Assembly (NCBI GenBank): GCA_054661495.1
Contig: BAAFSQ010000109.1
Coordinates: 1-30,077 of the forward strand
Direction of reading: 5' to 3'
Length of the DNA: 30,077 nucleotides
From: Zygophlyctis sp. KS116
Lineage: Eukaryota > Fungi > Chytridiomycota
In this document: piece after piece, positions 4,930-7,309 of the stretch
Layout: each line of letters begins with the position of its first letter
Position numbering within the stretch: the first letter of the stretch is position 1
Position numbers and translations under genes: made by a program
Notes under the pieces: generated by a model
Database searches by the model: none
Seen by the model: only the letters and a program-made list of their open reading frames with translations
Told to the model about the DNA's origin: nothing

Positions 4930-6819
4930 ATGTATAGAGTCGTGATCGTTATCAGTAAGTACATAAAATACATTAATCTTGTAGTAAGTGATCGGGTCTC
5001 ACAGGGAGTTGCTCAAGATAAATCTGGCCCTGCATTGATAGAGAAACTGAAATCAGGGCCTTGGGAAATAGTATATTGTGATCTGGTTCCTGATCAAGTT
5101 GAAAAGATTCAGGAAAGAGTATTGTATTGGAGTGAACAATCTATTGATCTTGTGTTGACTAGTGGGGGAACTGGTTTTTCACAAAGAGATGTTACTCCAG
5201 AGGCTATTTTACCATTGATAAATAAGGTGGCGTCTGGATTGGTTCATTTGATGATGTTTAAATCATTACAAATAACTCAAATGGCTGCATTATCAAGGCC
5301 GATTTGTGGGACTGTTGGAAATACACTGGTGATTACTCTGCCGGGGTCTCCAAAAGGTTCTGTAGAGAACTTTGATGCGCTAGAGTCAGTTATACCGCAT
5401 GCATTGGATTTAATAAGAGATTCTAAAGATAAAATAGAAAAGGTGCATAGTAGATTGCATGCTCATGATTGTGTAAAACATTCTGATATAGATGGTAAAT
5501 TAAATAATTTAAATTCAAAGTCACAAAAAGAAGTAGGGAGTCGCCATTCCCAATGGTTTCGTATAATGATGCGCTAGATATAATTTTAACTCAATCTCAG
5601 ACTTTACAGGCTAGTAGAATTTCAATTTTTGATCAATTGGTTTTAGGGAGTGTTTTAGAGTCTGATATTATCTCTGAAAAATCTTTACCTGAATTTAGAG
5701 CCTCGGTAGTGGATGGATACGCAGTTTTATCAGGTGATGGTCCAGGAAAGTATGATTTGGCATCTGTATCTACTGCTGGAGAAATTGAATTTTTACAATC
5801 TATAAGTTCTGGTCAGATTGCACGAGTTGCTACTGGTGCAGCGGTGCCAAATGGGGCAGATGCAGTTGTTATGGTTGAAGATACAAGTCTGATATCTTCT
5901 GAAAATGGTCAAGAAAAGGTTATTGAAATTAAGGCTCAGGCTACTGTTGGGCAATTTATTAGAGAAATGGGATCAGATATTAAAAAAGGAGATATTATTT
6001 TACAAAGAGGGCATGTAGTATCTCCTGCAGATATTGGTATAATTGCATCTGTTGGAATTATGAATATTTCAATAATATCTAAACCCAAGGTAGCTATTTT
6101 TTCTTCAGGAAATGAAATTGTTGATCTACAAAGCCCTTCAAAGGAACGTTTCGGACAAATTATAGATTCAAACAGACCAACTTTAAAATGTCTTTTAAAT
6201 AAGTTTGGGTTTCCTTGGATAGATAAAGGTATTGTTTCAGATGATTCTGCTTCAATATTTTTAATGATTCAAAAATCTTTGGATGAATCAGACGTTTTGA
6301 TAACCACTGGTGGTGTTTCTATGGGAGAATTGGACTGCTTTAAAGGAGTTTTAGACTCTTTAAAAGCTACAATCCATTTTGGAAGAGTTTCAATCAAGCC
6401 TGGAAAGCCCACAACATTTGCTTCCTTGGAATATAAAGGAAAGAAAAAGATAATTTTCTGTCTCCCAGGAAATCCTGTGTCTGCTTATGTCACATTTCAT
6501 CTATTTGTACTGCCTTGCTTGCATGCATTATCCGGAAATAGAGATTGGCAGCTCCCAATTGTTAGAGCAAAGGTATTATTAAAAACTTTAAAGAGATTAG
6601 CTTACCGAATCTTTAACTGCCGATGCAACCAGATGTGAATTCAAGCGTGTTTTTCTAACTAGAGTTGGTAATGATTATATTGCTAATATTACTGGTAATC
6701 AGATTAGTTCTAGATTATTATCTTGCTCATCTTCAAATGGATTCTTTAGATTAAAGTCTAAAAAGGAATCAGGAACGGACTTAACGGGAGATAATTTCGT
6801 TGACGTGGTTTTAACATAA
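4930..6819 (+). CDS. Gephyrin/Cnx1-like molybdenum cofactor biosynthesis protein (MogA G-domain fused to MoeA E-domain)
   Basis: G-domain SDR, TSGGTGFSQRDVTPEA, LPGSPK; linker RSRESPFPM; E-domain SVVDGYA, TGAAVPNGADAVVMVED, TTGGVSMGE, KPGKP, LPGNPVS, TGNQISSRLLS. Introns 4955-4984, 5495-5520, 6573-6600; TAA at 6817-6819. Confidence 0.93.
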
Positions 6820-7309
6820 TGGCAAAATCAACTTCACGGAGCCCTATGAAAAGGACTCCGTCTAAAAGGACTCCATCTAAAAAGACTACACCAAAAAAAG
6901 GGAAAAGTAATACAACATTTATTTTAAATTGAGAAGCACATCGTTACAAGCCAGGGACAGTTGCCCTGCGTGAAATTAGAAAATATCAAAAATCCACTAA
7001 TTTATTACTCAGGAAACTTCCATTTGCTAGACTGGTAATCTCATGTATGCTTATTAAAGGTAAAAGAAATTGCAATTGATATGACAACTGGCTACGGTCC
7101 AGCAAACATCATGCGGTGGCAATCTCATGCTATTTTAGCTTTACAAGAAGCATCCGAAGCGTTTTTGGTTCATTTATTTGAAGATGCGTAAGGATTATTG
7201 AATTAAATTTAGGAATCTATGCGCAATTCATGCAAAGAGAGTCACTGTCATGCAGAAAGATATTCAGTTGGCAAGACGGATCAGAGGACCTTGGGGTGGA
7301 CTTGGATAA
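6819..7309 (+). CDS. CENH3: Centromeric histone H3 variant CenH3 (CENP-A/Cse4/Cnp1), ~137 aa, 4 exons; absent from the ORF track
   Basis: Exons 6819-6906, 6934-7034, 7060-7187, 7213-7309 give ...[106 protein letters not shown]. CenH3 diagnostics: PFARL instead of PFQRL, RWQ instead of RFQ, EDAN instead of EDTN, longer loop 1, non-H3 tail. Confidence 0.93.

Follow-up and report, generated by a model that had tools for sequence, protein, structure and literature searches.

Introduction

Among microsporidia, spacers between genes are very short or absent, transcripts start or end in neighbouring genes, and each mRNA carries one translated open reading frame (ORF) (PMC2742732). A different arrangement is found in caliciviruses, influenza B, the hypovirus CHV1 and the victoriviruses, in which UAAUG or AUGA motifs allow a stop codon and a start codon to share bases after a long ORF (PMC10275272, PMC2699510). 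In a 2023 review of termination-reinitiation, the documented cases that follow long ORFs are described as dependent on an upstream element that is structured and complementary to 18S rRNA (PMC10275272). In fungi, the glpks3-glnrps7 pair of Glarea lozoyensis forms a dicistronic operon with a 26-bp spacer (PMC4471562), and experiments in yeasts and Aspergillus have shown that the 9-bp IGG6 spacer derived from it supports reinitiation downstream of a full-length ORF; in yeast, a stop codon without the spacer element gave no downstream signal (PMC10352335). Nuclear multi-ORF transcripts also exist in Agaricomycetes and green algae (PMC4503453, PMC7896298), and leaky scanning has been reported as the route in green algae (PMC11291117). 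In this study, we describe a join between two genes in the chytrid Zygophlyctis sp. KS116, located on contig BAAFSQ010000109.1 of assembly GCA_054661495.1 (12.7 Mb, 1175 contigs). The whole contig (C109), 30,077 nucleotides (nt) in length, is referred to as the window. At this join, the stop codon of a gephyrin gene shares one base with the start codon of the gene for the centromeric histone H3 variant (CenH3).

The locus resembles each of these systems in part. Its spacer statistics and short ATG-free leaders fit those of compacted genomes such as Encephalitozoon cuniculi, Antonospora locustae and nucleomorphs. Unlike the microsporidia, which are intron-poor intracellular parasites, this organism has an intron-rich genome of 12.7 Mb with introns of about 26 nt, and the spacer at the join is zero or negative. 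The base-sharing stop and start after a long ORF are as in the viruses, but the viruses need an upstream structured or 18S-complementary element that was not found here, and gephyrin and CenH3 are a nuclear, spliced pair. As in the Glarea operons, two nuclear fungal ORFs lie on the same strand; the Glarea spacer is tiny and lacks promoter and poly(A) signals. However, the Glarea genes are functionally linked (polyketide synthase and nonribosomal peptide synthetase) and are separated by 26 or 9 bp, whereas here the distance is -1 and the genes are unrelated. The read-through transcripts of Agaricomycetes and the polycistronic loci of green algae provide a precedent for nuclear multi-ORF mRNAs in fungi and algae, although the Agaricomycetes genes are also transcribed independently. 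Leaky scanning requires few upstream AUGs, and the 1.8-kb gephyrin ORF contains 35 ATG triplets in its spliced coding sequence (CDS); therefore, leaky scanning cannot reach CenH3. Finally, the ATGA and TAATG motifs of bacterial coupling are identical to those seen here, but a eukaryote has no Shine-Dalgarno logic, and in the genome sample described below overlap or abutment is limited to 2-3 of the 54 tandem pairs. Overlaps are proportionally far more frequent among the same-strand pairs of bacteria.

Results

Positions 6810-6821 of the window read TTTAACATAATG. Direct reading places the gephyrin stop codon TAA at 6817-6819 and the CenH3 start codon ATG at 6819-6821, so that base 6819 is common to both (TAATG, 6817-6821, forward strand). 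The original prediction had claimed this overlap together with the identity of the two genes, and both gene calls are borne out by the sequence, by Pfam and by the relatives. The overlap is real, conserved and correctly annotated.

The upstream gene is of the gephyrin/Cnx1 type (MogA-MoeA) and serves molybdenum-cofactor synthesis. It occupies 4930-6819 of the forward strand in four exons (4930-4954, 4985-5494, 5521-6572 and 6601-6819), and its three introns, as read from the sequence, are 30, 26 and 28 nt long and all of the GT..AG type. The exons of gephyrin and CenH3 were searched separately, and spliced joins were used for codon statistics and alignment only. Exon by exon and in order, the Pfam matches are MoCF_biosynth (2.7e-25), MoeA_N (4e-40) with MoCF_biosynth (1.6e-28), and MoeA_C (1.7e-07), which is the gephyrin/Cnx1/CnxE order of an N-terminal MogA domain (MoCF_biosynth) followed by MoeA_N, MoCF_biosynth and MoeA_C. 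In the homology search, relatives of the long exon carry the name gephyrin. The last exon terminates in ...GDNFVDVVLT directly before the stop codon, which is consistent with the usual gephyrin C-terminus.

The downstream gene encodes a CENP-A/Cse4/Cnp1-type histone H3 variant of 137 amino acids at 6819-7309 of the forward strand, with exons at 6819-6906, 6934-7034, 7060-7187 and 7213-7309, introns of 27, 25 and 25 nt, and the stop codon TAA at 7307-7309. An H3-type histone fold is indicated by Pfam Histone matches on exons 2, 3 and 4 (4e-09, 2.1e-06 and 3.2e-09). The exon that spans loop 1 and alpha-2 has its best matches in CENP-A, Cnp1 and Cse4: Schizosaccharomyces pombe Cnp1 aligns without gaps to its residues 1-42, and human CENP-A also matches, whereas canonical H3 chains align only from residue 17 or 18, past loop 1. 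This is the pattern of the longer loop 1 and the alpha-2 helix resembling the CENP-A targeting domain. The N-terminal tails diverge among lineages (three of them begin with MPKSNSQSPRRR.., MPRNGQRLHRLSQKRK.. and MPRSSSHSPQKGRQSK..) and are unlike the ARTKQTARKS tail of H3, while the fold is near-identical. Named CenH3 or cse4 homologues of other fungi are 74-81% identical. The CenH3 frame cannot extend farther upstream than an in-frame TGA at 6801-6803; therefore, 6819 is its first ATG. A second in-frame ATG, at 6846-6848 in exon 1, lies 26 nt past the gephyrin stop codon, exactly as had been predicted, and occurs only in the window lineage and its 98% identical twin.

With the long gephyrin exon as the query, five close metagenomic relatives were found at 98, 77, 73, 72 and 65% identity (L003, L001, L005, L029 and L002, respectively), followed by a drop to 47-48% in named fungi (Rhizophagus, Umbelopsis and Boothiomyces). 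L029 was the one further lineage contributed by a metagenome scan, in which the remainder were mostly bacterial-level MoeA matches of 31-45% identity. The joins of L001, L002 and L005 were read by hand because the gene-finder model fuses gephyrin and CenH3 there by way of false introns. The join sequences are ACATAATGG in the window and L003, ACGTAATGC in L001, TTGTAATGC in L005 and L029, and ACTTAAATGC in L002. Counting the window and L003 as one lineage, TAATG is present in four lineages, and L002 differs by a single base, having TAAATG, a 0-nt abutment in frame. The exact overlap is therefore not required. Because the join recurs in independent metagenome contigs, these sequences indicate that it is more than chance. 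It has been kept despite changes in the gephyrin C-terminus (..VVLT, ..VLLT or ..VILTL, with one codon gained in L005 and L029) and despite a CenH3 tail that varies between about 16 and 31 amino acids before the conserved HRYKPGT. Exon 1 of L001, L002, L005 and L029 has no second methionine, and the next one lies inside the histone fold. We therefore regard the overlapping or abutting ATG as the real CenH3 start and the fallback ATG at 6846 as irrelevant.

In L001, L002 and L003, the gene order is patatin lipase (-), gephyrin (+), CenH3 (+), proteasome beta (-), ..., PDE (-); L005 and L029 are short contigs that show only gephyrin followed by CenH3. CenH3 does not stand beside gephyrin in the cultured chytrids Gorgonomyces and Boothiomyces, nor in three more distant loci with a CenH3 86-88% identical, and the adjacency is thus a feature of the clade of the window. 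Neighbouring tight junctions drift in the same lineages (16/16/7/15 nt from MAU2 to PRE4 and 18/18/8 nt from PDE to MAU2), while the distance from gephyrin to CenH3 remains at -1 or 0. The divergent spacer between gephyrin and the lipase stays at 104-145 nt in all lineages.

Spacer statistics were obtained from 230 kb of the 12.7-Mb assembly (C109 and positions 1-100000 of both C1 and C2) with a purpose-built gene finder that combines hexamer coding scores, trained intron models and a chained parse permitting overlaps. It recovers CenH3 exactly, gephyrin except for its first, in-frame 30-nt intron, and the 16- and 18-nt spacers of the PDE, MAU2-like and PRE4 run. In this sample, 115 genes were predicted; 80% of the sequence is predicted CDS, and the introns, about 400 in number, are most often 26 nt long. 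Very short spacers occur in all orientations. The median is 93 nt for the 54 tandem pairs (smallest as called -1, 0, 10, 13, 14, 16, 18, 21, 25, 32, 35 ...), 55 nt for the 30 convergent pairs (down to -17), and 188 nt for the 28 divergent pairs (14, 23, 33, 35, 48 and 49 among the smallest). These medians roughly add up: half of the divergent plus half of the convergent value gives 122 nt against the 93 nt observed for tandem pairs, as expected if every gene has one 5′ and one 3′ region of its own. Tandem spacers form a continuum without a separate tight class. One tandem pair called at 190 nt, the lipase/paraoxonase pair, is really a -4 or -1 overlap, so the tandem range extends from -4 upward. 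The finder missed the first exon of the paraoxonase gene here, and the predicted tandem spacers are therefore upper bounds.

A rescan of all predicted stop codons for overlap motifs found only two tandem overlaps that open long ORFs, gephyrin/CenH3 and lipase/paraoxonase, both in the window; the figure of 2-3 overlaps or abutments among the tandem pairs includes a 0-nt abutment called at C2 98317. The lipase/paraoxonase overlap lies at 2863-2872 on the minus strand, where a patatin-type lipase ends in AAA TGA and a paraoxonase-like gene opens with ATGATG (an ATGA overlap of 4 nt or a TGATG overlap of 1 nt). The paraoxonase-like first exon encodes a hydrophobic N-terminus, MMKYFLAFSVLLSS.., and is followed by a 26-nt intron. 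For this genome, the statement that such overlaps are not normal in nuclear genes is accordingly too strong. A histogram of stop-to-start distances had been proposed as a check on coupling. In our sample, distances of -4, -1 and 0 occur, followed by hardly any below +10, with a hint of a gap from +1 to +9 nt in small numbers. The check is less decisive than had been proposed: a ratchet of deletions also piles pairs up at 0, -1 and -4, and a pile-up at the boundary alone is no argument for coupling.

Divergent pairs cannot share a transcript, and some are as tight as the tandem ones. A Voldacs-type/flavoprotein pair (C2 4088/4124) is separated by 35 nt, with both N-termini complete according to Pfam, and further pairs lie 23, 33 and 49 nt apart. 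Promoters in this genome therefore probably overlap neighbouring coding sequence. Furthermore, the 40 nt that precede start codons contain 2.4-fold fewer ATG triplets than expected (30 against 74). The deficit is equal in the three frames and is not seen beyond -40, which points to cap-dependent scanning of leaders no longer than about 40 nt. Genes in this genome thus seem, as a rule, to have short capped leaders and promoters that lie within their neighbours. At CenH3, the nearest upstream ATG lies 82 nt before the start codon, and the ATG-free end of the gephyrin last exon (6740-6818, forward strand) is a candidate zone for the transcription start and leader. The corresponding ATG-free runs are 82, 82, 47 and 58 nt in the window, L001, L002 and L005, respectively; runs of at least 47 nt occur at 34% of random genic positions. 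Within the zone, a CRE/bZIP-like hexamer, TGACGT, stands at 6801-6806 on the forward strand, 18 nt upstream of the CenH3 start codon. The hexamer opens with the in-frame TGA, and GACGT is kept at this site in all lineages. Five of the 29 TGACGT sites in the 230 kb lie at most 80 nt upstream of a start, a zone that makes up 3.8% of the bases, an enrichment of about 4.5-fold, and we regard the hexamer as a weak lead to a possible promoter element of CenH3. Other words are over-represented in the 40 nt before starts across the same sample, CGCGT about 20-fold (8 occurrences against 0.4 expected) and GCGTT/AACGC 5-8-fold; they resemble MCB/E2F sites positioned nearly at the ATG itself.

In the 40 nt after stop codons, TTTATT and AATAAA are 3-4-fold enriched. 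Downstream of the gephyrin stop codon, the first A/T signal of the TTTATT type occurs in the 27-nt CenH3 intron 1 (6907-6933, forward strand), with none in 6820-6906, and gephyrin mRNAs therefore probably end inside CenH3. It is speculative to name intron 1 as the site of 3′-end formation.

The sequence around the join was also searched for a device that could support reinitiation and for signs of RNA processing. The stop and restart codons are close enough for viral-type coupling (overlapping or within about 20 nt), and this proximity is conserved in five lineages, with a purine at -3 of the CenH3 ATG in each. No structured or 18S-complementary upstream element was found: the RNA fold of 131 nt around the join is no better than that of shuffled sequences (z = -0.57), the four-lineage alignment at the join contains no compensatory or covarying pair, and the TGGGA core of the viral termination upstream ribosomal binding site (TURBS) is absent from -100..-1 in every lineage. 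Synonymous constraint was assessed as pairwise third-position identity in amino-acid-identical codons. The 3′ end of gephyrin shows no excess, with 0.50-0.53 in the last 15-25 codons compared with 0.505 in the other 394 aligned columns, only 10-13 codons being informative at this end. There is no AG acceptor immediately 5′ of the ATG, either at CenH3 or at other tight pairs, and an Rfam search of the window returned no RNA family.

For evidence of transcription, a run search yielded three metatranscriptomes with 6-7% of words. Contigs from wetland and freshwater metatranscriptomes match gephyrin and PRE4 exons at 5592-5829, 7830-8037 and 8029-8194 with 98.6-100% identity, which indicates that genes of the organism, or of a near twin, are transcribed in these habitats. 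Two H3-like metatranscriptome pieces at 6972-7012 were assigned to other organisms. A protein search for spliced CenH3 transcripts with the intron-less exon 3-4 ORF of L029 as the query returned only the CenH3 of other fungi, at most 81% identical over the full query. This ORF (L029 1424-1645) exists because CenH3 intron 3 is absent in L029, where exons 3 and 4 form a single reading frame, and tiny introns are therefore being lost inside the clade.

Discussion

The original prediction offered two options for the join: coupled translation from one bicistronic mRNA, or overlapping transcripts with the promoter of CenH3 lying within the gephyrin coding sequence. Our indirect evidence leans to the second. 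We consider it reasonably probable that gephyrin and CenH3 are expressed from separate, overlapping, monocistronic transcripts, as in microsporidia, with the start site and core promoter of CenH3 inside the last gephyrin exon. The absence of a reinitiation device, the continuous distribution of tandem spacers, the equally tight divergent pairs and the 40-nt ATG-depleted zone all lean this way. TAATG looks like the end state of spacer loss under strong genome compaction rather than a coupling device of the bacterial style. The adjacency of gephyrin and CenH3 would have arisen in the common ancestor of a few uncultured lake fungi that form a small clade, and the spacer would have shortened until the stop codon met the start codon. 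Further loss would then be blocked, both codons being under selection. The boundary would also be absorbing, since a new spacer would need an insertion precisely at the join; L002 shows that a one-base change is tolerated. CenH3 transcription may begin inside the last gephyrin exon, probably in its last 50-80 nt without an ATG, and the ribosome would scan a short capped leader to the first AUG at 6819. Gephyrin mRNAs would extend beyond their stop codon and be polyadenylated inside the 5′ region of CenH3, and each mRNA would thus yield one protein.

Several observations weigh against separate transcripts. The join is fixed at -1 or 0 in five lineages while other tight spacers of the same loci change length, and this fixity could reflect selection on the join itself. 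Promoter DNA appears to be kept where possible, as in the 104-145 nt before gephyrin, but is lacking before CenH3. With a promoter embedded in the 3′ end of gephyrin, higher synonymous constraint might be anticipated there, and none was seen in the few informative codons. The contigs of the three metatranscriptome runs are all short and lie elsewhere, none reaching the join. In addition, the spacer statistics depend on our own gene finder, which missed at least one first exon (paraoxonase), and on a sample of 230 kb out of 12.7 Mb.

One rival reading is a single bicistronic gephyrin-CenH3 mRNA from which CenH3 is made by termination-reinitiation. We judge it unlikely, although it retains appreciable weight because selection for coupling would yield the same -1/0 pattern. 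It would account for stop and start codons that overlap or abut in all five lineages (-1, -1, -1, -1 and 0) beside other tight spacers that drift, for the lack of non-coding DNA upstream of CenH3 compared with more than 100 nt in the gephyrin/lipase divergent spacer, and for the purine at -3 in every lineage. Moreover, the dicistronic operons of Glarea lozoyensis (26-bp spacer) and the derived 9-bp spacer provide a fungal precedent (PMC4471562, PMC10352335), and viral UAAUG/AUGA reinitiation operates with the stop and start codons within about 20 nt (PMC10275272). However, viral reinitiation after a long ORF requires a structured 18S-complementary element (PMC10275272), and none was found at the join; a yeast stop codon without a spacer element gives no downstream expression (PMC10352335); and the two genes are functionally unrelated, one acting in molybdenum-cofactor synthesis and the other in centromere identity. 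The genome-wide depletion of ATG before starts also points to cap scanning, and the equally tight divergent pairs indicate that this genome does not need co-transcription. The absence of a device weakens bicistronic coupling, which keeps some probability in view of the reinitiation across a 9-bp spacer in fungi. It is decidedly unlikely that CenH3 is translated mainly by termination-reinitiation from a bicistronic mRNA, at a join long held at -1/0 without a TURBS-like element, as a cellular counterpart of viral UAAUG coupling.

Alternatively, one primary transcript could cover both genes and be processed into two mRNAs, for example through cleavage or spliced-leader trans-splicing in the manner of nematode or tunicate operons. 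The same-strand adjacency without a spacer and the several other tandem pairs at 10-25 nt would suit such a mechanism. It is nevertheless very improbable, since base 6819 is required by both ORFs and a single pre-mRNA cannot give both complete mRNAs. The absence of AG acceptors just 5′ of the ATG at CenH3 and other tight pairs and the negative Rfam search of the window also count against it, and spliced-leader trans-splicing is not known in fungi. It is scarcely credible that the overlap is an artefact of annotation, with CenH3 starting elsewhere (at ATG 6846, in an upstream exon or at a non-AUG codon) or gephyrin ending earlier. The second in-frame ATG of the window lineage would permit it, but four other lineages have no second methionine in exon 1 before the one inside the histone fold. 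In addition, the CenH3 frame is closed by the TGA at 6801-6803, and by two in-frame stop codons within 9 codons upstream of the ATG in L001, and the gephyrin C-terminus is conserved to the stop codon in all lineages and covered by MoeA_C.

The gephyrin-CenH3 join is a well-documented extreme of gene packing, here involving an essential gene. An essential and normally cell-cycle-regulated gene without upstream non-coding DNA represents a natural test of the minimal eukaryotic promoter and leader, and the join is likewise a test of whether cells, and not only viruses, reinitiate translation after a long ORF. In this lineage, genes are packed as in microsporidia and yet are densely interrupted by 26-nt introns; therefore, transcription-start, polyadenylation and splicing signals must be written into coding sequence. 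If a capped CenH3 mRNA starts inside gephyrin, the solution of overlapping transcripts extends from parasites to a non-microsporidian, intron-rich fungal lineage, and if there is no such mRNA, the join would be a rare cellular case of coupled translation.

Other features of the locus were recorded in the course of this analysis. Downstream of CenH3, a spacer of 37 nt (7310-7346) separates its stop codon from that of the convergent PRE4-like proteasome beta-subunit gene (7347-8194, minus strand), and the layout is the same in L003. In L002, an additional lysine-rich ORF of 126 amino acids (4152-4529, minus strand) lies between CenH3 and the proteasome gene and is absent from the other lineages. 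The spacer of 16 nt between the MAU2-like stop codon and the PRE4 start codon (8195-8210, minus strand), aagtttaaataaaaac, includes AATAAA. It is near-unchanged among L001, L002, L003 and the window although synonymous sites are saturated, and it looks like a shared element that serves as poly(A) signal and leader; in L001, the MAU2-like stop codon has moved 9 nt into it, leaving 7 nt. Two stretches of the window, 16927-19798 and 24668-28911 (2.9 and 4.2 kb), have no gene calls in an otherwise 80% coding genome. They carry several ACGCGT sites, and the GC skew reaches +0.27 at 26-27 kb.

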